Below the pieces are notes generated by a model. It was not told the origin of the DNA. It saw nothing but the letters and a program-made list of their open reading frames with translations, and did no database searches. Shown here one piece after another: positions 6,670 through 52,074 of a stretch of DNA of 64,000 nucleotides. Source of the DNA: Asterias rubens (lineage: Eukaryota); contig NC_047071.1 in NCBI RefSeq assembly GCF_902459465.1, forward strand, positions 3,534,001-3,598,000. Direction: 5' to 3'. Positions within the stretch are counted from its first letter, which is position 1, and every line of letters begins with the position of its first letter. The position numbers and the translations under genes are program-made.

Positions 6670-9600
6670 ATGGAAGTGTTAGGCAAATGGCTAATTGGAA
6701 TAATGTTGGTCTCGGCTATGACTGGTAAGTTAAATTACCTCGTTCCATATTGTAATAATAACTTAACACTAAACACATTTATAGTGAAAACGCCCACTCA
6801 CTAGAATTGTGATACTTCAATATTTTTGTTCAACAAAATTGTCTCGTTTCCTTTGCATTGCGATCTTTCTGAACAATTTACATGCTAAAAACAAATATAT
6901 ATACTCAGTCTTTTTGGAGATTTATGGTACAGATTACAGTCCATTTTTCAGAAACCATTTAAACCATAATTTCAAATGAAATGCAAAGTTCTAATTTATA
7001 CTTGACCATAATCAGGTTTAACTATAGGAAGGTTAAAGGTCTATGAGCAGAATGCAGAGCTGTGGTGATTGGGACAGTAACTATAGAAAGTATCATTTTG
7101 GGTGTCAAGCGGGGGCAACACATTGGGGTGGCTTTTTAATAAACCAAACCAAACCAATCTTATTGGGTGGAACAGGGGGTAGCAAGAATAGTTTCCCCAC
7201 CCCTCCCGGCTTGGTGTGAGCCTCTTTAAGATGCTCTTGTTTCTTTGATTAGGAAGTTCAGCATCCAGCGGAGTGACACGCTTTATAGAGGACCATTTTC
7301 TTCCGTATTCTTGTGACGTAGACGAGGGTACATCATGTGAGATGGACCATGCTGATCCAAACCGTGTCTTGATGAAGTTTCTTCAGCGACAGATGGGTGT
7401 AGGTAAGATGGCGTTTGTGCCTGCCGTATTTTCGATGGAAATGATTGATAATCTAAAATTTGGCTCTTGCAAATTAATATTTGATGTTTTGGGGTATAAA
7501 GCATCAGTCATTTAAGAGTCGCGACAATGATTATGATTCCTAACCATCCCTTTCAGTATGCACAAACAACCAAGGCCTTTTGTGAAATAGCGTGGACAGG
7601 AAATAAAATAGCGAAAAATGTTTTAAATTTGAACAAGAACCGAGTGTTTGTGGCCCAACCGGAACAACATAGAGCGATATTGTGCTTTCCCCAGGTGTTG
7701 TCTATACGATCCCTGTTCTTTAATCTTTCTTGTTAAAAACAGTGAGATGCACCCCACAAAGCCAAAACACCCAACAAGTTAAGTTCCTACCTACAAATTA
7801 CCCCACAATGTATATCGTGTAAGCACAGGCAGTCTTGGGACAACCAAGATGTCTGTGTTTGGGACAGACAGAAAACGAAATGTTTGAAACAGAAAAAAAA
7901 ACCGAGTGTTTTGGGCAAACATGGAACAATAAATTTCAGACGGAAAAGAAATAATCAAACTTGCAAAATAAGTGTTCAATCATTTTGTTGTCGATTACAC
8001 AGATCCTAATCTACGAGCACGTGCTTCAGAAACCAATGCTACTGGATTTGAATGTGACTTCCAACCTGATGCTCCTATTGGTCCACCAGTTCCATTTATG
8101 TGTAACTGGGAGTTAGAGACCAACGATGCTGCAAACTGGGAACCAGGGAGTATTGTTTGGAACGCTTTAACACAAGAAGAAGGACCATTTTTAGGTAAGT
8201 TTAAACAGACTTTGTGATAAAAACTACTTTAATTTCTGAGTAGTTTTTTTTCAAAAACGGCAAAATAGGAACACCTTTGATGTTTACTCTTAAAGATGTT
8301 TGGAAAATACAATTAAAAATCATCCATGTGAAGACATCGATCTAAAAGTCATCAATGCTGGACATGTGTTGACTATGCAGCGAGCGAGAACAGTATTATT
8401 CAAACTACTGGACCAATCACAGAGCTTGTTCTTTTTGTAGGTGCTTATGCTATATCTCGTTTGAACAGCCAAACAGCGATGGGTAAGACCAGCCTATTGG
8501 CTCCTATGATGCATAGCCGGACTGACGTCACAACAGTAGCGTTGTTGGATGTGGACTATTACATACGTGGTGAACCAAAAGGTAAGTACTAGAGACAATG
8601 TAGAATGGTATAATAGTTAGAATTCGACAAAATCGAAGTTTAAGCATAAAGCAGCTCCATGAAATTTGGCGCTGTTCGTACTTATATACCATTTTACACT
8701 TAGAAGTGTCATGTCCTTGACAACAGAAGAGGAAGTATGCTGCTACGTGATTTATTCACATATTAAATACCTAATAAAAAAGTAGTAGTTAATTCAAAAG
8801 TGTAACATTTGAATACTATTGAATACTACAATGATAAAACACATTGTCTTGCTAATTAATTGTTTGACTTGTTTTAATTGAGAAAATTGATAAATAATTC
8901 AATTACTATATTGTGGTTTTTCCCCTTAGATTGCATTCTAAGTATTAAACTGCTGATGGAAAATAAAGAGCGTATTTCCTTGTGGTCGACTGAAGACAAT
9001 TTCCCTGAAACTGAGCAATGGATTAATGTACGCTTCTTGGAGTTTCACCCACCACTGTCTTACCAGGTTTGTTTCAGGTCGTTAGCTGTGGTTGGCATGG
9101 GAGTTAAGCCCTGGAATCAATTAATATACTAAACAAAATATGCTTCTCATACAGTGACGTAACTAATTGATGTACGTGCCCCCCCCCCCCGCCCCAATTT
9201 GCAATCTGGCATTTTGAGATTAAAAGTTAAACAGTGAGTAACATGCTTATTTCAGTGTTTTAAAAATTATTTTTCAATTACACATGTGTTTCTTTTTGTA
9301 CCGCCACCTCAGATTATTTGATGAAATTAATCGCATAACAAGAGTGACGAAAAGAAAGGGGGGCTTGTATAAAAGGAACTGCTAAGTTTTTTTATTGGCA
9401 GAAGTGCATCCCTGAGAAAAAGAACGGCACAGCCCTTCGTATTGGCCTAAAATATGGCGCTGTTTTCAGACAATGGGAGACTAATGTCAGATATGAATAA
9501 CACAATGTTTTATGCTGTATGTAACTGTCTTTCACAGATTGTGTTTGAAAGTACAATGACCCCTGGTGCAGTAGACAGACCCTATGTTGCACTGGATAAC

Positions 9601-12600
9601 ATTGTCCTACGCTCAGGAGGTAGGATACAATACTTCCCCTTTTAAACGAAAAACGATCCTCACATGAAATTGCTTGCACAAAGTGTTTTCTTTTCCAAGA
9701 ACTATAGGCATTACCAATGGCGGTTCAAGTGTAACTCCATCAAATTGTAGGCATCGACAGTAATTAAGAGACGATCAATTTTAAAATAAAACGTAATATA
9801 AACAATGCTCATAATAAAATATTGTCCTATTTCATTGTGAAATAGCAATACTGAATACTGACCCACAGCATGCCACAAAATGTGACTCACAACCTCGGTT
9901 TGGCTGCAGTTGATCTGCGTTTGTAGAAAACAAAATGGCCGCACTAAGGTGCTAATGTAGCATTGAAGGAGTGTTAAGGCCCGGTCACACAGGCCCCGAT
10001 AACGATAACGAGAACGAAAACGATAACGATAAAAATGCACGCTCGCGATTGGTTGAATTGCTCCACGCAGAATACGCCCACGCTCATTCAACCAATCGAG
10101 GGCGTGCATTTTTATCGTTATCGTTTTCGTTCTCGTTATCTGGGCCTGTGTGACCGGGCCTTTAGGAGGAGTGAAGAGATTTTATCTGCGCTGTGACTTT
10201 TCATTGCAACTTTAAAAAAAAAAATCCCAATGTATAGTTGTGTTTGTTGTGCTTAAATTCAGCTCTTCCATCAATGTATGATTGCGAGGAAGCCGGTACA
10301 TCCCTCACAGATGACTGTGGACTCATTGAAGTGAGTGATGATAACTTCTGGTCGAGGGGGGTTGGTGCCACGCCCACATCTGGGACAGGTCCGTCGGTAG
10401 ATCACACACTAGGCACGGCAGACGGTATGATACTTTGTTTTCAAACTGCTTAATATTTCATTAGGTGTTTACGTCACTTGAATTCTCTATAAACCAGAAA
10501 GGGAATCGAGTACCTTTCTCAATTTACTTTTCTTCATTGTATGATTGTAAACTATAACTGGTTCCATCAAGCGAATTATAACAGTCTGGGCATATAAACG
10601 ATGGACAAAGGGTCTGCCACGATGCTAAACATCATGACAGTAATAGGTCCACGAATAGCAAAGAACACTATGGGTTTTGCTCCTGACCCCAAACTCCAAT
10701 AGACGATCCTGAACCTGCAACGTCCTTCTTGACTTATCGTAGAAGGAAAGTTTTTGTGTAATATTGTAAAAACAAAACACCCAATAAGTATCATCTCGAT
10801 AAGTCATTGTCTACCATTTTGTTTATAGGTGGTTACTTATACATAAAGTCAAGTGAGATGTCTGCTACATCGATAGCATCATTACAGAGTGTTGAATATT
10901 ACAAATGGAGTGATCAAACACCATGTACCCTCAGGTTGTACTACCATGCACTAGGGGCTAATCTTGGATCTCTCACTGTAAGAATAAACTCAACCCAGTC
11001 GGTTGACTTGATGGAGTCTATCACATTAACAAACGCAGATGACTGGATTTCATATGACGTGGATTTATCTACTGTATCGGGAAGATATCGAGTAAGTATA
11101 AAACGGGGACCATTTTGGAATTGGGGATGGTTAGTTGGAGGGGTAGATGCTGGCACTTGCCTTCCCCTGCATAACAAGGGGGCCATGAGTTTATGCCCCT
11201 GATTTGTTCATCAAATAAAAAAGGAACACATTTTTAAGACTGCTGTAAATGTTGACACCCCTCAAAGGTGTACATTTCATTTCGGTCAAGCTGATTTCAT
11301 GTCCACACCTTACGGAAACCGAGAACAAAACAAAAAAGGGAAACCAAGGAATTGTGTGTACAAAGTCTATGGGAGGTTCTTCACAAAAGGACAAGGGAAA
11401 GAACAAAAGATGTCTCCACAGAGATGAAAAAAAATGGGCATCTATGTTTACTTTGTTAAACTACTTTGCTTTATTTTCGACTAGATTATATTTGAAGCAA
11501 CAGCGACAGGACCTGAGGGCGATATAGCCTTAGATGATATTGAGTTTCAGCACAGTCAATGCATGGGTAAGATTTATCATGTATTCTGCTTGGATAGTGT
11601 GATTGTTGAACCATTCTATGTCAGACTTTGTTCCGTTTATGTGTGGCCGTTTCGAACCAATTTACCAAAGACGGCTTTGAACAGCTACTTTGTTGAGTAA
11701 AGAATATGTTTTTGTGTTAATATTACTATTTTCAATAGAAAAATCAAGATATCGAAAGATTACTATAGTTCAGTCGGTAAGAGGGATATTCAGTCTGCAA
11801 CTTGTAGAGAGTGATTCTTACTATTGTTTTAAAAGCTGCCATCATTTTATCGATATTTTTTTGCATAGGAGTGGACTTTTGCCGAAGTTTTCCTTGTCTG
11901 AATGGTGGGTCGTGTACCCAGACGTCACAAGACGACTTCCAATGCGGGTGTGCTAAAGGATACGACGGACTCGACTGTAGCACCAGTAAGTGATGACCAA
12001 CGCGACCGGTATCGTTCCCTTTTTTTTGGGGGGGGGGTCGATCACGCTGCACCAAATGCCCGGCCAATATCCACAGACGAGGTTTTAATGCTTCCCACGG
12101 CATTAATGCCTCTGTGCATTCTTGATCGTTGTTACAGGAGTCAAAACAACAGCCATGTTCAAGACAAAGCCTTAAGCTTGACACACTCCAAGCACTTCCG
12201 GGTAAAAATTTACCCAAATATATGGGTACCATGGGGCCTGAGCAAGGGGTCAGTGTGACCCAGTCTTCATGAAAATGACCAATAAATGGGTCAAACTGAC
12301 GCGGAATCTTTTTAGCACTTTCCGGGTCAACCTGACCCAGAAATGAGTCAGGCCTTGAACCGGGAATGGGTCAAACCCGAGAGTTTTAAGAGTAAACTTC
12401 AAAGAGTACACGATTCAATCGCCGTAAAAACTGATCATCTTCTAATTTTTCCCAATTTTTAGATATCGACGAGTGCAACCTCGACCCCTCACTCTGCAGT
12501 TACGATCCATTGAGACTTTGCCAAGATAAGTCCCCTGGATATGAGTGTGTGTGCAAGCCAGGGTACATGGAATTTAAAGGAAGATGCATCGAAGGTAAGT

Positions 12601-27557: not shown

Positions 27558-30500
27558 TTATATATCTGTTTCTGTGCTATTATTTTCAAGTTTCAAGACG
27601 ACACCACCAGAGTTAATATCAGTCCTTCTGGCGGATTGCTTATCACCATCCCTGCCAGATGCTCCTACCAGAAGAGGGTCATTCTCATTCGGAGAAAGGG
27701 GCGAGTTTCTCGGAGATGTGACGTCAGACGAGTCCGTTTCCTTAGGTACCGTTTTCTTGGCTGGGGGTTTGATATGGACGAACGTCTCGATCGGAACGCT
27801 AGAGGGCACTTTTTCTGCTTCTTGATTTGTCATCAAATGATCACGATCGGATTTATACATTGGAGGAGACGTTTTGTTCAGCCAAGCATACTGTATCAAG
27901 GGAGAAGAAGACATTATATGCAGAGAAATAATTGACTACAAAATTAAGTTGGTTAATCAAGCGTAGATTTTGTGCTCCGTACAGTTGAGGAATACAAGCC
28001 TACAAGTTTTCTTTTCACTTCACTTTTCTCTAGAACCCGAGCCAATAACTACACAATGATGTGACACAAAAACTTGTATACGATCACGCAACGAAAAAGT
28101 AAAGTCAGTTTGATTGGCGGAAGCGTATCAAAGTTTTCATTCATTTGCGTCTAGGCTACGATTAGTTAGAGCAAGAACTAAGTTTAGGCGTAGCCCATGC
28201 AGCAAAAGACCCGCCCTTTCATAATGACGTAACAAGACCAAAAACAGCACTCTCACTGACGGCCAATGCAAGTAGCCTTAATACCGAGTTTAAAATCCTC
28301 ATAGACAGAATGCACTATCCAATATTGTGGCTGTAATTCGAATGTTGTTAGAAGATTGTGATGCTGAGTAGGCCTACGTGCAGTTAGGCTTAACAGGACA
28401 TTTTAAGAAGAAATTAACAACCGCAGAAAAACGAGGTATTTAAAGTTAGCATGCAAATGAGGAGTCCAATTTTGTGCAAGGCCAAAAATGGCTTCTGGTT
28501 GCTCTTTTTGTTGTTATGAATTTATACTACTCACACAATTCCACAGCATGCAGATACAGGCAAGACAACGTCCAAGACACCAAGATTGCAGATAGAAGCA
28601 GGCAGACTAATGAAGCAAGCAGACAATCAGCAGAAAGACAAATAAAATATCCATACTTTACCTTGGCTCACCTTAACCAAACCATGATCAGTCTTATCTC
28701 TTGACTCCTCTTGCACTTGTTGAAGCTCAGGAAGAATAGGCACCCGATTGATAGTCAGTGCTCTGTTTCTCATTAGTGTGATGGCAACAAACCAACGGTT
28801 GCGGGCTCGACGCGACTTCACTTCAGATGTGCTTTTGGTTGGAGATGATGTTTTCTGACCTGTAGTTAAAATGTCGTTGTTATTAGTTATTACCAACACA
28901 TAACAATATCGTTTCGGACCTTGTAGGGTCTTTCTCTGATTTTAGCCTTCGAGAAAACCTCTGCTAAGGTCGAAATGTCAGGCCGTTAACTTTGTCTTTT
29001 TGTTTGCATTTATACATAATAATGTTCTTTTGGTTGGTACAGCGGTCGCAACAGCTAATAATTTGCCTATATTACCAATAAAACCAACCGTTTACTTAAA
29101 ACTTAAAAACCACTCCGATTGCCTCTTAACTGACCTTCTTCTACGATGTCAAATGTCTTGTAACTTGTGAGTTGTGCTGATGTGAACTTGTTCTTGCCAA
29201 TGGACTTCCATAATAAATGACAAAACGTGACCACCACAGGATGGGTATGGGCCACCTCCAGTTGAATAAACCCAATATAGGCTTTAAAACCTGCAATGGG
29301 TACAAATCGAATCAAACAGAAATCTTCACTACTTAACGAATGAATCGATATGGCAGTTTGAAAGTTAGAAACATTTGAGTTTTCAAAGAAACTAACCAAT
29401 TGAATACACCGGTTGTGGTGCACAAAAGATGATCCTGACTTGATATTTATTTGGGAGTATAAGTGGATACGAAATTTGCGAGTCACATGACCATTCTCTC
29501 GTGACACCTTGCCCCACATTCTAAAGAACTTTTTCAATTTGTATTCATTCCCTATTCTCACTTGCCAGTTTTCATTCAACAGTGGCAGTGTATTTCAAAT
29601 AAGTCCGATTAAGGTTAGTGTCTGTACTTTTATTTGGGTTCTTATTCCTTGGACTAAACATGCTTTACCTGGATCCCAAAGTTCCCATCCACGCATTAAG
29701 GTGCACCGATCGATCCGACCAATGAACAAAACGCCGAACACTACTGCCTTCAGAATCCTCATAAGACAGGATATCAGACCAAGAAGGACGTTCATGAACA
29801 GCGTGATGTAAACAGTGACGTTGAAGGCTCGCCTTAAAAACGAGAGTGACAACAGTTATTGCAAAGTTATTTCATAATTATTGTTGCCAGCTGAATCCTA
29901 CACAGTTGATATAAAAAAACTGTAAAATTGTTATAATAAAAAAATGCTCAAAAGAAGGAAATATTTTCAGAAAATGTAAAAAACTACACGAAAATAATGT
30001 GGAACAAACCCATTTCTGAGTCAACATAATAATATCAGTTTCAGGGCTGGGTCACTTGCCCCAAAGTCTGGTACAAAGTTTGTACTTTGCCAAAATATAT
30101 CAAGAATTCGCTAACCTATTGTTCAGACTCAAATGTATTGTCTTCTTTTTCTTCTTCTTTTTATCTTCTTTGTCAGCTTGAAGAAAAGCTAATCGAGACA
30201 GAAATACTTGGGCGTAGTACAAAATGAGACCAACCACAAAGCTCAACCTGCGTAGATAACCATGTGAGAATCAAAAGATAAATACACAATGACATACCAG
30301 CTACTGCACTAAAACAAACGTCTACTACTGAGGGAGGAGGCTTCAACAAAGTCAACAAGATATTACATAATCGATATTTACATCCAAGTTAATGAACAAT
30401 ATTTTTGGGGTTAATACTGAATCTGAAAACTATTGACATAGTATGTCATTTTGTCCTGAAATATAATGTATAAATAAAATTTAAAATAAAATTTAAAATT

Positions 30501-32811: not shown

Positions 32812-35800
32812 TATAAAACATTTATATATAGTACCAAAATCAACACAATAAAATAGTTCGAATGAAGTACAGACAGTTTCATGAAATTAATTACAATACA
32901 CTTTTGTTGGAAAAGATAACATGCGCGCAGTTTCTTGAAATTTGAGCATCCTTGATGATGAGCAAATTCGGAAGGATTATTTGTTTCCATGACGACATTA
33001 GAGATGTTTTGAGCATAAAGGTGAGTTTGTATGTAAAGATGTACAGTCTCGTGTAAGACTGCAGTCTTACTCTGGTGTGGGTTTTCTTAGAAGGTACTGA
33101 ACTCGCTCGTAGAAATGAGTCTTCTTAAATTCCTCGTCGATATCGCTGTCTACTGCGGTTTTATCCATCGTCGAATCCTGTCGAGTACAATTATAATAAA
33201 TGGTGTTTGGGAATTTTTTTCAAAACCACGCCTTTGGTCTGTAGGTTTCGAAATCCTCTCTACTTCTTCATGTGTTTTAAAAACAGTGGACGGACCAATG
33301 AAGGAGCCGAAATTCAAAGACTGGTTTTCGAAATGACCTGCAATGTAGCCTAATATATTATCTTGTAAAAGATTTCAAAACTAAATTGTCGTTTCAAACA
33401 AATTCAGAATTTGTATTAATTTATTTGTTTAAACCATAAGACTTAGCAGAAGACCCGTAGTAAAAGGAAAGAAAATTACTAAAAATTAACACAAGGCCTA
33501 ACATAAAAAAAAACATCGGGCGAAGTTAAACACCCTAACAGCCAAACACAGAATAAGTTGGCGATTAAAAATATGCATCAACGGATATTTCAATATATAA
33601 CCCATTCACATGGTAACATAAGTCTTTTGAAACTCACCGTTTCCTGGAATACTAATCTTCTAAAATCTGTGTATATTCCATAGCCGAATCGGATTTCCAG
33701 TCCTATGTAGCATATGAACACTGGACCCAACACTGCCGTTACTATCTTACCTACAATCTAATATTAACAGATAGAAATTGAAGATCACATTAAACATTGT
33801 AATGAGAACAAAATACGAGCATTTATAAGAGCAAGAATTTGTCATGGCATCCATTTTATCTGAGAGTGGTTTGGACTTAACGATCGTCAAAGACCATTTC
33901 TGGCAGTTCGGACAAGGACACATTGAATCTAATGTGTGTTTTTAAGTATCGATGGCTTTTGAACTTACCCCTTCCTCTTTGGGACAAGCTAAAAGAACAG
34001 CTACGTAATAGAAACTCCTGTAACACAACAAATTCAAAGTTTAATTTATGATGTATTTGACCACAAAATGTATTTGTTGCATAGGAAAAGAACTCAGGAA
34101 TTTACTGAGCAGTGTTTAATGTACATCGATGTAAAGGAAAAAACATAAGTTATATTCTTGTCCATAATAAGTTAATAACATTACTCATTCTGGAGTTACT
34201 TCAATGAATTAACCAATCAATAATCAATATCAAGTAAGTGATCGATTGGTCGATCAATCAGTCAATCAGTCAATCAAGCAAGCAATCATACTGTCGTGAT
34301 GAAATATATATAGATATGTTTAAAGTAAATGAAGTGATTTTCTTACCAGACAGTAGAGTAGATTAGACCAATAACATTGCCAGTTAATTTATGTTCAGTA
34401 CTCAAACACAGAAGGATTGGATAGTAAACCACGCTGATTTCAAACACGTTGACAATCGCTATGAATATTAAAACAGTTCCTATTGAGAAAAAGAAAGAAA
34501 ACAAATTATATTAGTTTCTTCTTGTGTTCTAGCCTATGTCGAGGAAAAAAAAGATTCTGAAGAGCTGTTGGTGGACACTATTGGTAATTACTCAAAATAA
34601 TTGTTAGCATAAAACCTTTCTTGGTGACGAGTAATGGGGAGAGGTTGGTGGTATAAAACATTGTGAGAAACGGCTCCCTCTGAAGTGGCATAGTTTTCGA
34701 GAAAGAAGTAGTTTTCCACGAATTTGATTTCGAGACCTCAGATTTAGAACTTTGAGGTCTCGAAATCAAGCATCAGAAAGCACACAACTTCGTGTGACAA
34801 GGTAGTTTTTTTCTTTCATTACTATCTCGCAAGTTCGATGACCAATTGAGCTCAAATTGTCACAGGTTTGTTATTTTATGCATATGATGAGATAAACCAA
34901 CTGTGAAGGCTAGTCTTTGACAATTACCAATGGTATAAAATATTGTGAGAATCGTCTCCCTCTGAAGTCAAACGTAGTTTTTGAGGAAGAAGTAATTTTC
35001 CACTCAGTATTAAAAGACTTTAGGCCCGAAGCCTGTTTCTTTCATTGTTACTAATTTAGTCCAAATTTGGACAGGTTTGTTATTTTATGCATAATGTTGG
35101 GATGCACCATGATAACACCAAGTATGAACACTTGTCTCTGACAATAACCAGAGATGTCTAGTGCCTTTATTGAACATCCGAGGTGAAACTGTTTAAAACT
35201 TTAAAATATAAATATTTACCTTGGAAGACTCCAGGAATGTGACTTATATCTGGATTAAAGAACCAATCACCAGTGAATAAAAGAACCACACACGTTGACA
35301 TGGCAGCAAATGCGCATGCGTAGGATAATCGATCCTCATACGCATCGATAAAGTTAGAAGGTCTGTGGGTAGATAACAATTCATTTAGAGTTAGGTTTAT
35401 CTGATCACTTGGAGAGATAATTAATTGACTAGAGCAAAACAGGTTGTTTGAATTGAATTACTTCCTGTTTTTATCACAGATCAAGGATACAATGTTTTCG
35501 TGCATTCGTCTAGTCTTACATTTAAGTTACATGGTCTAGTTTTATTTTACATACATTATGTTTTTTTCTTTGAGCGAATTTATAAATAATAATAAAAAGG
35601 TTTTTTGTTAAAAGCGAATTTTAACAGATGTTGCTGATCCAAAACGAAAAACATAATGCATAATGCGTGAGCGTAATGAATACTGCATAATGCTTTTGCA
35701 TAGTCCCACAGATGTACAATAACACAATGGCTATTATGTTAAGTGGAACTTGACGACAAATCTGTTTATTTTATTTAACTTAAACGCGTTTTTTCCGTAA

Positions 35801-45000: not shown

Positions 45001-47935
45001 TAATTACCAATAGTGTCCACTGCCTTTAAGATGCATATAAACTTGTACTAATCTCAACACTCTCCCCATCTCTGTGTTCTTTATTTCAGGGTTTCTCATA
45101 ACCCAAGTCGTATCCTGGCTCGTACTGTTCTTCGTTGTGTATTTTATAATTTATCAACTTCAGAAAACTGATGAAGAATTAACATGGCTTCTCAAATGTT
45201 TCGAGGGATACTGGTAAGCCGTATTATTTGTTGATTTCAATTGATTATTTATATTTGTAAATATCAACATAGCTCGATGAAAGAGGCTCTTTAATATCCA
45301 TCACGGTTTTCGTGGAGAATCATTGTTTTGGAAACAAGATGAAATTTAGGATATGATTCAGTCACTTGATACCTGAGGCATTGTGCTTAAAGGCAGTGGA
45401 AACTATTGGTTATTACTCAAAATAATTATTAGCATAAAACCTTTCTTGGTGACGAGTAATGGGGAGAGGTTGATGGTATAAAACATTGTGAGAAACGGCT
45501 CCCTCTGAAGTGCCATAGTTTTCGAGAAAGACGTAATTTTCCACGAATTTGATTTCGAGACCTCAGATTTAGAACTTGAGGTCTCGAAATCAAGCATCTG
45601 AAAGCACACAACTTCGTGTGACAAGGGTGTTTTCTTCTTTCATTATTATCTCTCAAGTTCGGTGACCGATTGAGCTCAATTTTTCACAGGTTTGTTATTT
45701 TATGCATATGTTGAGATACACCAACTTTGAAGGCTAGTCTTTGAAAATTACCAAAAGTGTCCACTGCCTTTAATATAACTAACAAGTTGTTGTTTCTTCT
45801 GTCAAGTGGTCGAAACACCAAGGTCTTTCTTGCGTTAGAATAAAAGTAAAACAAGTTGAGTGTTATTCGTTAGACTCTCTACAAAATAACTCTGTAATTG
45901 TGTGGATCTTTGCTCATTTTTAACTTTCATTGGGTAACCAGGTAATCATTGGGATACCGTGGTAAAAAAATAAACTAATTCTTTTTACCCTGTATAGGTT
46001 AACGTTCGTAACGGGGATCGTGTTTTACTACGTCCAAGTTGCTCTGGCTCATATTGCTTTCTTACAAAAAGAGAAAGAAAAGAGAAGGCATAAAGTCCAT
46101 TTGAGCCTCAACAATAGGTAATTCTGAACAAAGTAATCAAACTATAACCTTTGTAAAAACAAAAATAGTTGAAAGAAAAAAGCCGTTTGTGTTCGACATA
46201 AATTAATCTTGACCCTTGAACAAATTAATCAGCCTTTCAATAAAATTAATATACAACTACCACGAACGGCCGTATTGTATTCTCATTTACTCTCCTAATT
46301 CCGTTATTATTATTTCACCAGGCGAATGTTTCATGTTGTAGTTTACGTGACTTTATTTGTGAACGTCATAGTTGGGTTAGTGTCTTGTTTGATGAGGATC
46401 GTCAAGGCTGTTATCTTTGGTGTACTCTTCATCGGGAGAATCGATCGATCGACCCTTATGAGAGGCTGGGAGTTATGGGACCCAGGTAAGAATCATGGAC
46501 CAATTGCGGATACAATCCTAATTATTTAAAGAGAATGTCACTACAGCAAAGAAGAGATATCGAGTATTCAATTGTTGTTCTTTCATTCCTATTCAGGTTT
46601 TAAATCTTACATGGGTTTTCTGGAGCTAGAGGTTGCCCATACACATCCAGTTCTTGTAACATTCTGTCATTTTCTGTGGAAATCAGTCGGGAAGGACATG
46701 GCAGAAGAAAAAGCATCTATTGCGTTTTGGAGAAAAGTACAAACCAAGAAAGGTAATGTTCACCATGTGTACTTTACTTGTATAAATCAAGTTTTAAACC
46801 ACAAAGGGAAAGTGACTGGGTAACTTTGAATTAATTGGGTTGAACACAAAATTAATTTTGATTTTGTATAAAACCATCAAAACTGTGCTTATTCTCGTAA
46901 CTAAATTTATAATAATTATTAAAAGATGCTCCACTAGATACTCAACTTATACAAAATAAAAGCCATAATTTATTGGAGTGTTTTAAATTAAACTTTTCTG
47001 TGTAATTTCGTCCTCAGATCATGATTTTCCAAAATGAATTTTACACGAGATAATGAAGCTTTTTGTAATAAGCATTATTTGGCTAAACAACCCAACTAAT
47101 TGGTTTATAGGTTCCGAGGGAAGCATGGCCATTGAGCTAAGAAGAGGGTGCCGTCAAAAGCCTCGCTGGCCACGTAATAAATGGTTTGTAGCAATCACCT
47201 TAATGCGTAATCGTTCCTTAACCATTGCGAGAATGAGAATTGCTCCAGAGTTACTTCAAGTCAAGCAAGATATTGAGAAGGAAAGACGAGCAAAACAGGT
47301 ATAGGCATATAGCCCTTTCTATATCCCTACACCCTTTCGAACCACCATCTAAAAACTAACATCTCAAGTTAATATCAAAATAATTGGCGAACAATTTGGG
47401 CTAAAAATTCGTTGCAGGGGGTTCATTTTTTTTATGGCAGGTTTATCAAACTCTGAGAATGAGAAGAACAACCCGTTTGCGTAAGACTTTTACCAACGTA
47501 GAAGATATAAGAACAAGCAGAAGGAGGAAAAACACTTAAATCCACACTGACAAACAAGCCTTCATTGCAACAATCGTAATACAAATTGCTAGGGCTATGT
47601 AGGTCTATACATATAATTATAAAAGGATGCATTTCCTTTTAGACTCATAGTTCAATGAGTAGTCCAACGTGTTTTCCCTCTCTAGGTAGCCTACCGTTTT
47701 AAACTTCGTGAATGGTTATGGTGACTGAACAAAAAATGTTTTTAAAAGGAAACAGATTTTGTATTTAATCATTAATAATAATAGGTCTTATGGTCATTTG
47801 TTTTCCCAGACTGGAGCCGTCTCCACAACAGTCATTTCAAATGGATCAAACTCGACACTCGATGCAGAGGGAAGCAAGACTCTTGCTCAAGACGTCAAGG
47901 ATACAGACAGCATGTCTATCCTTGTCAGTGTGTAA
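39095..47935 (+). CDS. STRA6L: STRA6-like multipass receptor, copy B (19 coding exons, 688 aa as assembled)
   Basis: Exons 39095-39193, 39552-39637, 39920-40062, 40316-40448, 40542-40590, 40825-40938, 41062-41156, 41393-41448, 41566-41627, 42614-42764, 43500-43575, 43739-43814, 44385-44433, 45090-45213, 45998-46117, 46322-46485, 46597-46752, 47111-47298, 47810-47935. Same motifs and intron phases as copy A. Confidence 0.88.
41912..42161. mobile_element. Foldback MITE with 9-bp TSD (Mutator-like)
   Basis: 119-bp arms with one mismatch that I could see, 12-nt loop, GTCACTATA direct repeats at 41903-41911 and 42162-42170. Confidence 0.85.
42846..43300. mobile_element. Non-autonomous element with sub-terminal inverted repeats and a long 3' hairpin (class uncertain)
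   Basis: TTGTTATACCT (42846) / AGGTATAACAA (43150), 22-bp palindrome at 42959-42980, hairpin at 43174-43294. Confidence 0.5.
43902..44311 (-). mobile_element. tRNA-derived SINE, near full length
   Basis: Minus-strand head has A-box (GTGGCCGAACGG) and B-box (GGTTCGAATCC), then a GTGTCCTTAAGCAAGACACTT body and a GCGCTATATAA...(TTA)-rich tail. Confidence 0.75.
44647..45025 (+). mobile_element. Kolobok-like MITE family 1
   Basis: TIRs intact. Right flank TTAA, left flank TTAT. Confidence 0.85.
45391..45769 (-). mobile_element. Kolobok-like MITE family 1
   Basis: TIRs and TTAA flanks, 379 bp. Confidence 0.85.
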
Positions 47936-49277
47936 AAGGCTCGCCCTCAGCCTCAACAAAGGGGGTTCATATCTGTACCTCGTCCTTCAAGTAAAACTTC
48001 CAACAAACCATCATGTTCTGGGAAAAGTCTGTGGGAAAAGTGGCCCAACTGTTACCCCGAAACCAGGATATACATCACAAGATACCAGTCGACCTCGATG
48101 GGTTTAAACTATGAAAGAGAATGCATTTATATGTATTCGAGATGATAACAAACTCTCGTCCACCTTGTGTAATGGCCGAACACAATTTTCAGCGAGTTCT
48201 GCAATCAAAACTTGGAAAAAAAGTTTCCGTATGGCGCCACCACTTTTTCATTCGATATTAAATAAAGTACCTAATTATTTACCTCATTGAGAAATCCCTT
48301 TTTTATCCATGTCGTGTATTAAATTACCTTCTCTTTGAGCCACGAGCCAGCCTTCCCGCCACATTTGGAATCTTTTGATCTTTATTTCAACTTGTAGCTT
48401 TACTAATCAAGCCGATGTAATGACAAACCCATTGGAGCACTCTTCACGCAAAGTTGGTGTTGATATAACAGCATTACATGCCCAGTTCAACTCCATGAAT
48501 GACGTCATAACGTCATAGTGGCTGACAAGGATATCGTTTGTGAAAGATAAGTACTACAGTGCATTATTTGAAAATGAGAGTTCGTTTGAGAGAAGATGCA
48601 AAACAAAACTAATCACGGGCTACTGTGATGGTTTGATATGTGTGGAATTCTACGAGGTCAAACGATCACGAATTACTGAATGTTACGGTGATTGTTTAAC
48701 AATGTTTAACCGCAATGAGGAAACCCACAGAAAGAATTGAATTCGAAACAATGCTCCGAGTGAACATCTAAAACACCTTTGTGTAAAAAAAATCTGAGGA
48801 ATTTAGGTTGCATAATAATTGATTGATGAATGAAGGAATTCTTGTGGAACCAGTGCTATGTGTTCTCCTGACTGTCAGCCCATCAAACGTGCACCCAGCA
48901 CAAGGCAGTCCGAGGCCGGGTATAAGAAAAGGTAAGACGTCTCGCATATGGTGGTCTCCGATTTTTAAGTTTCTGTCCCATTTCTTAAGATAGTATGCGT
49001 GGTTTTGGTAAGGGGCGTTAAGTTTGCAAGAATCTAAACGCACGAGGACACCAATCATTACGTTCATTCAGGATTTCTATAAAACGCCCAACCAAGTCAC
49101 TTTCGATGGATTTCCCTTCGTATCTCGATGCATGATGCGCCTCTCTTTAGATTGTAATCTTAAAAGTAGACATTTTTGAAAGAGAATACTGATCTGAGAT
49201 ATTGAACTTTTGTTTTGTTCTCCACTAATCTCAGGAAAAGAACACAACAGTTATTGACTTCATCTTCTTGATCCACG

Positions 49278-50598
49278 ATGTATCTTATGAAGCCAACGTC
49301 GATCGTTTTAGTATGGTGTTTGTTCTACTTCCTTCAAGTGAGTAATGGTGTACTACAGCATGACCATGTTTTACCCGGTCACTACTACCGGCCATTACAG
49401 CAACATCATCGGGTAAGAAGAGCTGCCGCCCCCGCACCAAGGACCCCGCTCCGTGACTGTCCATGCAGGTATAGTACCGGAAAAGTTTCCGTATCACGTC
49501 ACCACTTTTTCATTTGATATGAAATAATATAGAATCTAGTTTACCTCAATGAGATATCCCTTTTTGTAAAAATTAGTGAAAAGGTGGTGACGTGATACGG
49601 AAAGTTATTCAAAAAAGAGTTATCAACTGTTCATTATTACCTGCCTTTGTTTAAAAAGTTATTCTTTCACGTGGACTTTACAACGAAGAGGCAATGTTTG
49701 GATAGATTTCCGCATCATACCACCTTTTTTACTTGTTAAGAAATCAAATATTATAATTGAATTACCAGATGAGGTATTCCTTTTTGCTGGTGGCAGGATA
49801 CAGAAAGTTTTCCCTTACACTATACCTTGCCACCAATTTATTTATAAAAAGTAACCATTATTGCTCTTCTGTCTTTGTTCTTTATTCTCAATGCATATAC
49901 AGTCAAGAGAAGTTTGCATGGAAATATTATGCACAAAATGTACTTAAGACAATCTACTTAATAAAGCGATCTTTAAAAAAAAAATTTTTTTTTCTTTCTG
50001 TAAAGCACTTAGAAACACATATGAAGCGCTTTAAATTATTATTCCATTTTCTTCCCTTTTAGTTCAAGTCCTTGTTTGAATGGAGCCGAGTGCGTATCTA
50101 AAAAAGGCGCAATAGTCGGCACGGTGGAATTCAGTTGCACCTGCAGCGGTCAATGGGTTGGTACAACATGTGATAGCTGCCCACCGGGAGGTAAGTCAGA
50201 ACAAGTTTTAGGTCGAGTTGTCACAGGTCAATTCAAACTCTAATTTGGAAATTATCTTTCTTTTTTTAGGCCCTTTGTGTAAAAAAAAAAGGGGGAGTAC
50301 AAACAAATTGTTATAATATAATTATTAGAGTTTTCCCCGCAAAGCATTTTTTAATTGGAATATTAATTTGATTCTCAAATTCCCGAATGCACCTCACCAA
50401 AGATTTATTATTGAGGTGTTGCCTATAGTTGACTAATAGTTGCGTTTTCTTGTTTCCTCCTCCCTAGATCCACTATGCAGCCGTTCCTGCCTGGTACACA
50501 GGGATAATGACGTATGTAATGATGGTGGACCGGGGTCCATTGATGCAGTATGTGCGATTGGTACCGACTGTGGAGATTGCCCTTCAAGATGTCAATAA
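49278..50598 (+). CDS. Small secreted precursor (149 aa): signal peptide, His-rich propeptide, RVRR site, EGF domain, C-terminal Cys-rich module
   Basis: Exons 49278-49468, 50063-50190, 50468-50598 (450 nt, phases 2 and 1 consistent, canonical GT-AG). EGF PCSSSPCLNGAEC...FSCTCSGQWVGTTC, followed by CSRSC...CNDGGPGS...CAIGTDCGDCPSRC*. Confidence 0.8.
49479..49610. mobile_element. Short MITE, variant TIR subfamily
   Basis: Same body as the 24841 copy. TIRs read CCGTATCACGTCACCAC / GTGGTGACGTGATACGG. Confidence 0.75.
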
Positions 50599-51841
50599 AC
50601 TCATCACTGTGCAGCCATCTTGGATTTATCTTCTATGCAATCACATGTAACCAAACCGAGGCTGATGGAAGCTCAATTAGTCTGGTACCTTTCCCGTATC
50701 TACGACTAACATTAACGAAGATGAGCTTCCTATATACTACCGTGTTTGTACATAGGAACAAAATTACCACATCTATCTCATGATAATTCAAGAACAATTT
50801 TGTCTCTGCAACTTGGAGCTCTTTTCTCTGTTTTCATGAGGTTGATGGGAAATCATCAACAAGTTCATCATTCCGGAAATTAGGGCTGCACTGACTCACA
50901 ATAACACAAATTGTAAATTTTTTTTAAAAGATCAGTGTTAAAGTCCAAGCTCACGATGGCCTATGACCCCAAGTTAAACGGGAAGTATTCTATGCCCAAA
51001 ATGAGAAGTGGAAGTATTGGAATATTGGCAAATAAATAAAATTATTTATTATAAACACCTCAAAAAACTTGTGACAACTCTCCATATTTAAATGATGGTG
51101 TGTAAATAAAGTAATCATTTTCATAGTTGGGTTTTTTTTTTTTCTTGGATTACAAGGTTTGAATGCGCCTCCACCCCGCCCGCTCCGCCCCTCCCCACCC
51201 GGCCCCGTCGCCCAGACTCCCGTCCCATCTGATGTAGCCTGCTCCCCCCCCCCACCCCAGCAAACAATCAATATAGGTTATTATATTGGCCTCAATTTCA
51301 ATTATCTAAATATTTTGATTGAACTGGTCACCTGAATGATGACAGTCCAAGTGGAAATTGCGGCACATAAAATTACATTAAAAGACCACTTAAAAGTTTT
51401 GGTTTCATCTTTGGAATACATGAGGCGCGTCCCATCACTGCCCCAACCTTGTGCACTGGACCTATCGTCGCTTTTGACTCGGTGTGAAGTTTCAACATTG
51501 GTGAATGAATAAGCTTGAAATGAAAGCATTACTTCCCATGAACAAGGTGTGAACAGACAAAGACTTTGTAAAGCGCTCCTGAAGACGGACCGATAACAAC
51601 CCACAGAGCTTTAAAAAAATAAATAAAAAAAAAACGGGGGGGAGGGGCTCTTTGTGCCATTGGCAGTTTTTGACCACGTGAGTGCGTGTTTGAACCAACT
51701 TTACGTAAAACAAGTAGAATAATATGGTATTTTTGTTTACTCTTGTTAAATTTATTTGTTACTTGCCAAAATAATTGATACAATAATTATAACAACACCG
51801 GGCAGCTAAAGTGATGAAAAGTCGAAGGAATTCGCCTTTGA

Positions 51842-51860
51842 AAGCGCCCCCATGTGGTCA
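51842..51860. promoter_or_regulatory. CTCF-like motif at the putative MRPL24 promoter
   Basis: AAGCGCCCCCATGTGGTCA lies about 115 bp upstream of a strong donor (CAA|GTAAGT, about 51975) that probably ends a 5'UTR exon. Confidence 0.4.
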
Positions 51861-52074
51861 AAAATAAATAAGCTCAGTGTGGCCCTCTATTGACATACAA
51901 AAAAATTGCCGTCTGCCCCCGACCAGGTCAGGAGAGCGAAGACTGGTTCATTTTGATGAACGAAAATCATCCAAGTAAGTCGTTTAATTAATGTGTATTG
52001 GGCTCTAAATAGAAAATTGTGATGACGAAGAAGATAGTTAATTAAAATGTTTGTAGGCAAAAGTAAATATTTTC

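Follow-up and report, generated by a model that had tools for sequence, protein, structure and literature searches.

What kind of protein does a small gene at positions 49,278 to 50,598 (forward strand) of a 64,000-nucleotide window of the Asterias rubens genome encode, and does the cysteine-rich module at its C-terminus belong to a described family? The window is the whole stretch of contig NC_047071.1 from 3,534,001 to 3,598,000. An earlier note on it had taken the product for an unrecognised secreted precursor with a propeptide, a single EGF domain and a terminal module loosely resembling the Lin-12/Notch repeat (LNR). Judged by its sequence, the module belongs to a large, widespread and uncurated extracellular repeat family, and the starfish protein is a solitary, EGF-fused animal member of it. 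The finding concerns a domain family that had not been described, and not a new kind of system; the gene itself is already modelled, and mis-named, in RefSeq. Its three coding exons join to an open reading frame (ORF) of 450 nt, encoding 149 aa, with the following parts in window coordinates:

49278-49468, forward strand: coding exon 1
49278-49349, forward strand: codons 1-24, signal-peptide-like segment MYLMKPTSIVLVWCLFYFLQVSNG, ending VSNG, with S at -3 and G at -1
49350-49421, forward strand: codons 25-48, basic, His-containing pro-region with RVRR at its end (49410-49421, a match to R.[KR]R)
49422-49468, forward strand: Ala/Pro-rich linker with C61 and C63, read from the sequence; end of coding exon 1, followed by a phase-2 intron
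50063-50190, forward strand: coding exon 2, EGF-like domain (C63/C68/C74/C89/C91/C100) with an extra C103, placed by Pfam and RNA-contig junctions
50468-50598, forward strand: coding exon 3, with a phase-1 intron before it; contains one CDDGG-GTDC-type module (C110-C144, 50476-50580) and C148 as an additional cysteine, and ends with the TAA stop codon (50596-50598); placed by phmmer, profile A1 and alignment

The pattern that had been read from the terminal module, C-x3-C-x8-C-NDGGPGS-x4-C-x2-GTDC-x2-C-x3-C, is present exactly in the starfish sequence. Using exon 3 as query in phmmer against 1.84 billion representatives (50%-identity clusters), we identified 395 proteins at E<=1e-3, of which 75 reach E<=1e-10; most contain two to eight matched stretches, and the E-values against other proteins go down to 1.8e-41. 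A search with the protein P0004 as query returned 785 proteins at E<=1e-5. The family is defined here by an alignment and profile of 110 module instances (A1), and this profile found the starfish exon in a whole-genome search with an E-value of 2.2e-9 and 46.3 bits. Based on the phmmer and profile E-values, the match of the module is far beyond chance.

The family unit reads xxC-x3-C-xxAxDG-x-CDDGGPGS-xYxx-C-xx-GTDC-x-DCG-x-R, and the core that includes the starfish module C-x3-C-x7/8-C-[DN]DGGPGS-x4-C-x2-G[TS]DC-x-DC. By extraction with a hidden Markov model (HMM), which avoids the bias of a regular expression, 983 instances were obtained from 317 proteins; of these proteins, 292 (92%) contain at least two copies. 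Over these 983 instances the six cysteines are conserved at 91-99%, the aspartates at 86% (D11), 88% (D15), 99% (D16), 98% (D31) and 97% (D34), and the glycines at 97% (G17), 91% (G18), 95% (G29) and 91% (G36). T or S at position 30 (92%) and R38 (85%) are conserved as well, as is the D-G before the third cysteine (D 86%, G 78%). The starfish module has kept C-N-D-G-G-P-G-S and G-T-D-C-G-D-C, and in its tail, P-S-R, the arginine is kept and the glycine lost. N-D replaces D-G before the third cysteine, loop 2 has one additional residue, and an extra cysteine stands four residues past the sixth. The resulting cysteine spacing, 3-8-11-5-2, occurs in 16 of 380 instances extracted by regular expression, against 306 with the spacing 3-7-11-5-2. 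Asparagine in place of D15 is found in 3% of the HMM-extracted instances, and CNDGG in 22 of 621 extracted by regular expression.

In the copy of Pfam used (models up to 2025), no match to exon 3 (42 aa) was found even at E<=10, and no Pfam or NCBIfam model matched the module in the repeat proteins tested. Nor did the 110 isolated instances match either library, the best hits being chance matches to zinc fingers, and their profile found nothing at E<=10 among PDB sequences. Literature searches with motif strings and accessions returned no description of the module, and a review of the astacins does not describe it. An AlphaFold2 (AF2) model of the module, made with the 110-sequence alignment, reached a predicted local distance difference test (pLDDT) score of 76.9 and contains hardly any regular secondary structure. 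The clusters of AlphaFold DB gave no match other than this module in further, unnamed entries, on which the model superposes at about 1 A. For the 101-aa mature part, AF2 run without an alignment gave a poor model (pLDDT 56), which was not used. Searching the protein atlas with the exon yielded low-score leads only.

The six cysteines and the Asp/Gly-rich motifs of the module could suggest that it is a divergent Notch LNR repeat (PF00066), and in one neighbour cluster of the protein atlas, itself of low score (0.84), 23% of the members have PF00066. We consider this kinship very improbable and rejected it. None of the 110 instances matched Pfam Notch at E<=1, exon 3 did not match it at E<=10, and profile-profile comparison by hhalign with five LNRs of A. 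rubens gave a probability of 0.7%, whereas the true LNRs of the same genome score 32-45 bits with Pfam Notch. The prevailing spacing of the module is unlike that of LNRs, and PDB sequences gave no match although LNR structures are among them. The resemblance to LNRs pointed out in the earlier note is thus superficial.

That note had also pointed to similar modules in algal and myxobacterial secreted proteins, and the taxa of the holders bear this out. Named bacterial holders are Myxococcales, Sandaracinaceae and metagenome-assembled genomes of Alphaproteobacteria; named algal holders are the haptophytes Chrysochromulina, Prymnesium and Emiliania and one pelagophyte; and named hemichordate holders are Saccoglossus, Ptychodera and Glandiceps, one hemichordate protein being auto-named 'Low-density lipoprotein...'. 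In species-representative bacterial genomes, at least 120 loci match the back-translated module pattern, and the taxa among the matches listed include Myxococcota (Polyangiaceae, Sandaracinaceae, Bradymonadia), Phycisphaerae, Flavobacteriales, Cytophagaceae, Chryseobacterium, Caulobacterales, Hyphomonadaceae and Puniceicoccaceae. The distribution is strikingly patchy and 'marine', comprising Myxococcota, Phycisphaerae and Bacteroidota among bacteria of marine type, haptophyte and pelagophyte algae and ambulacrarian deuterostomes. Often the module is located downstream of a peptidase domain (trypsin S1, papain C1, astacin or a LAS-like peptidase domain), and secreted hydrolases seem to carry it commonly as an appendage. 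It is also found with VWA, Kringle, Fz, Ly6/uPAR and WD40 domains, and as tandem arrays alone in signal-peptide-bearing proteins. PF26571, listed for four holders, covers their shared N-terminal peptidase-like region and not the module. In four bacterial or metagenomic proteins (P0185, P0070, P0084 and P0108) we observed an N-terminal peptidase-like domain with H..D and HxH motifs, followed by two or three C-terminal modules.

The gene is genuine, expressed, spliced and present in a single copy in Asterias. Contigs from public runs were aligned to window positions 48600-52000, and spliced contigs from three runs (X3, X7 and X1) contain both junctions that had been predicted from the letters, 49468|50063 and 50190|50468. 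Both introns are canonical GT..AG (window 48900-51000), intron 1 in phase 2 and intron 2 in phase 1. The X3 contig (1164 nt, depth 151, from a run of 146 million letters) spans 49233-49466, 50061-50188 and 50466-51253. The X7 contig (1564 nt) has the same two joints and an additional 5' joint, from ..48600-48929 to 49233, and the X1 contig, from a slightly diverged Asterias-like relative, is spliced identically. A further run (X2) covers the introns and behaves like genomic DNA. RefSeq already predicts the same 149-aa protein in A. rubens (XP_033634772/3, exact look-up). The transcripts add the following features:

..48600-48931, forward strand: upstream non-coding exon (X7 contig record 22, joint 48929 to 49233, GT..AG, cut +2)
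49235-49277, forward strand: first coding exon, 5' untranslated region (UTR) part; contains an in-frame TGA (49269-49271)
50599-51253, forward strand: 3' UTR, contiguous with exon 3 (X3 contig record 16, unbroken over 50466-51253)

The exons could in principle belong to a longer protein, for example a STRA6-like membrane protein whose gene lies about 1.3 kb upstream on the same strand, or the prediction could be an artefact, and the X7 contig does link the upstream exon to the first coding exon. This is extremely unlikely. All three frames of the upstream exon carry stops and an in-frame TGA lies two codons 5' of the ATG, so that the ORF cannot be the tail of a longer protein. In addition, transcripts run past the TAA into a continuous 3' UTR, and the RefSeq models of two species give the same 149-aa product. 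The gene thus stands alone and is not part of a longer membrane protein.

At the 5' end, the X7 contig continues 323 nt upstream of 48600 and is spliced from the GT at 48932 to 49235, and the most abundant contig of another run ends 13 nt upstream of that junction. This pattern suggests that the gene has alternative 5' exons or that transcripts read through from the STRA6-like gene.

The features of the product support a stand-alone precursor of predicted secreted type with no transmembrane segment. By Kyte-Doolittle hydropathy the only hydrophobic stretch comprises residues 7-21, in agreement with the signal segment that had been placed at residues 1-24, and there is none after residue 25. 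The proposed His-rich propeptide ending in an R-x-x-R site was found as VLQHDHVLPGHYYRPLQQHH-RVRR, a region of 24 aa with five histidines and a pI of 10.8; the protein has no R-X-[KR]-R site besides RVRR (residues 45-48), which is kept in A. amurensis. The putative mature part has the 101 aa, the 15 cysteines (61, 63, 68, 74, 89, 91, 100, 103, 110, 114, 123, 135, 141, 144 and 148) and the lack of a transmembrane segment given for it in the earlier note, and is acidic (10.2 kDa, pI 4.57).

For the single EGF-like domain the Pfam score is borderline. Exon 2 alone matched EGF (PF00008) with an E-value of 0.0017 and 19.1 bits, and the full-length A. amurensis ortholog with 21.6 bits, the gathering cut-off being 21.5; matches to the laminin-EGF model were weaker. 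Its cysteine pattern is C-x4-C-x5-C-x14-C-x-C-x8-C, and we take the C-x4-C first loop to be of the structural Notch/Delta/MEGF type, the corresponding loop of ErbB ligands being longer. This pattern would explain why RefSeq automatically names the A. rubens protein 'multiple EGF-like domains protein 10', the A. amurensis ortholog being named 'uncharacterized'. MEGF10 itself is large, spans the membrane and combines an EMI domain with many EGF repeats. The starfish protein has 149 aa and a single EGF domain, and past residue 25 it contains no hydrophobic segment; the name has therefore been transferred wrongly and should be read as an annotation error. The protein is therefore 'unrecognised' in one sense and not in the other: its gene is already modelled in two species, and its C-terminal domain itself is uncurated.

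Based on this architecture, the protein is probably a small, soluble matrix- or surface-binding factor, processed by a convertase and consisting of an EGF domain and a Ca2+-stabilised module. It would enter the secretory pathway and lose its signal peptide after G24, and a furin-type convertase would cut after RVRR48, releasing an acidic, 15-Cys, two-domain polypeptide of 10.2 kDa that would act outside the cell. The near-invariant D11, D15, D16, G17, G18, G29, D31 and D34 suggest a Ca2+-stabilised unit. The five near-invariant aspartates adjoin cysteines and glycines, and the module occurs behind secreted hydrolases and in adhesive-type arrays, which suggests a unit for binding or anchoring; the module may thus be a disulfide-locked, Ca2+-stabilised knot with an extracellular binding or anchoring function. 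In the starfish, a phase-1 exon that encodes the module is combined with an exon for an EGF domain, and the product would bind to matrix or surfaces instead of acting as a hormone or toxin.

Several observations weigh against this interpretation. The starfish module is solitary, in contrast to the two or more copies in 92% of the holders; 25 other holders are also single-copy, and a tandem array is thus typical but not obligatory. Three of its conserved positions are substituted (D11 to N, D15 to N and G36 to P), which could weaken a metal site. Searches with Foldseek and VIA-align wide gave no PDB match to the AF2 model of the module and no characterised fold, and the number of cysteines in the mature part is odd, for which the earlier note had suggested a disulfide-linked dimer. 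Signal cleavage, convertase cleavage and Ca2+ binding are read from sequence motifs. Finally, no further echinoderm was seen among the named holders (no eukaryotic genome collection was searched), and the gene may accordingly be young and its role idiosyncratic.

The layout of signal peptide, pro-region and RVRR site, together with the small size, would also suit a processed signalling ligand, that is, a growth factor or hormone in which a furin-released peptide of EGF and module acts on a receptor in the manner of ErbB ligands or the exogastrula-inducing peptides (EGIP). The transcript is abundant in one run, and the mature part is apparently under purifying selection. However, the first EGF loop, C-x4-C, is of structural type and shorter than that of ErbB ligands, no orthologs were found outside Asterias, and elsewhere the module sits in enzymes and tandem arrays and not in hormones. 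A hormone or growth-factor role is therefore possible but less likely, and we would give it a small chance. A role in defence, as a peptide or toxin released against microbes or predators, is more doubtful still. The protein is small, disulfide-rich, secreted, lineage-restricted and seemingly highly expressed, as such peptides would be, but the acidic mature part (pI 4.57) is unlike cationic antimicrobial peptides and disfavours a cationic defence peptide. Furthermore, there is no likeness to any Pfam toxin family, the single-copy gene shows no sign of the expansion into a gene family that is typical of toxins, and divergence from A. amurensis is low.

The A. amurensis ortholog, the only full-length relative found, is 97% identical, with every cysteine conserved. 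The differences are F18S in the signal segment, V25I and D29N in the pro-region, and K77T. The diverged Asterias-like transcript of run X1 has nine coding differences, of which seven are synonymous and two are the replacements V25I and D29N in the pro-region; none of the four changes in the mature part alters the protein. The mature part thus appears to be under purifying selection. In the A. rubens genome (417.6 Mb) a single copy of the module was identified, both by the exon search and by the family profile.

In the hemichordate Ptychodera flava, each of the four modules of P0040 is encoded by an exon of its own (8026-8154, 8431-8568, 9157-9273 and 9808-9929 of JASXRY010000041.1:122860-135785), with phase-1 introns one residue before the first cysteine, and in the starfish, too, a phase-1 intron leads into the module exon, three residues ahead of that cysteine. 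Such phase-1 boundaries are the signature of a shuffling exon, and the arrangement shows an animal gene structure and not contamination. By pairwise scores the starfish module is no closer to hemichordate modules than to bacterial or other modules, and in a FastTree phylogeny of 81 named instances the supports ranged from 0 to 0.73, with none around the starfish module. With holders among bacteria, algae and hemichordates and in a single starfish genus, the module may be of ancient origin or may have spread horizontally, and its 40 residues cannot decide between the two. Tentatively, and with less than even confidence, we propose an undescribed, probably Ca2+-binding extracellular family that was spread at least in part by gene transfer between domains of life and then distributed in animals as a phase-1 shuffling exon, one copy of which was used in Asterias to build a lineage-specific, convertase-processed secreted factor.

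With 395 50%-identity clusters, and about 1000 instances in the 317 proteins examined, the family is a sizeable and well-conserved extracellular domain family for which neither a Pfam or NCBIfam model nor, by sequence, a solved structure was found, and it is a candidate for a new family entry. The starfish protein, being short, single-copy and apparently well expressed, may serve as a tractable animal representative.

In the surrounding window, exons of the RBP_receptor type (STRA6-type, PF14752) are located at 46320-46718 (forward strand), upstream of the gene, where a STRA6-type gene on the same strand had been reported. RBP_receptor exons were also observed at 29172-29834 and 34343-34465 on the reverse strand, and the window thus holds two STRA6-like genes in divergent orientation. 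A further STRA6-like pair is found elsewhere on the same chromosome and on C4. Intron 1 contains one more feature, which lies outside the gene product:

49481-49609, no strand assigned: element resembling a miniature inverted-repeat transposable element (MITE), inverted repeat I2 with 30-nt termini, 93% complementary

Contigs covering this MITE-like element reach a summed depth of about 294,000, which indicates a very high-copy repeat. A partial copy (85 nt, 81% identical) lies at 48219-48303 within the upstream non-coding exon, where it probably breaks the transcript assemblies. Elsewhere in the A. rubens genome, at G000:C20:9683285-9684931 on the reverse strand (loci L123 and L125-L129), we observed at least five near-identical LNR units (DLYNNGQCDQ[IM]CNRKECLFDAFDCE) with an exact spacing of 207 bp, an array that appears to have arisen by recent tandem amplification of a unit encoding an LNR.

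Among known systems, the closest are the repeat proteins with CDDGGPGS...GTDCxDCGxR units, such as P0040 from Ptychodera flava, P0035 from Glandiceps, the SpAN-like astacin P0117 from Saccoglossus, and those of haptophytes and Myxococcota, all of them unnamed or uncharacterised. The starfish protein shares with them the same six-Cys module at 40-55% identity, including the DGG and G[TS]DCxDC cores and the arginine tail, as well as a signal peptide, and with Ptychodera also the encoding of the module as a phase-1 exon. It differs from them in having one copy instead of two to eight, in the fusion of the module to an EGF domain behind an RVRR pro-region, and in x8 for x7, CNDGG for CDDGG and DCPSRC, with its extra cysteine, for DCGxR. 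Like the Notch LNR (PF00066), the module is a small, extracellular, six-Cys, Asp/Gly-rich unit, and Ca2+ dependence would be shared too if our reading of the aspartates holds; the two show no HMM or profile-profile similarity and differ in cysteine spacing. LDL-receptor class A and other Ca2+-binding, Cys-rich modules resemble it in a conserved acidic cluster beside cysteines (DCxDG-type logic), and no instance of the module matched Pfam Ldl_recept_a. With MEGF10 the starfish protein has in common an EGF- or laminin-EGF-like cysteine pattern, but not the EMI domain, the many EGF repeats or the transmembrane segment. EGIP of sea urchins, to which the earlier note had compared the protein, is likewise made as a secreted precursor that contains an EGF unit and is processed at basic sites. 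To that extent the comparison stands, as a loose analogy: the starfish protein has a single EGF domain of structural type joined to an unrelated module, and no sequence relative was found in other echinoderms.

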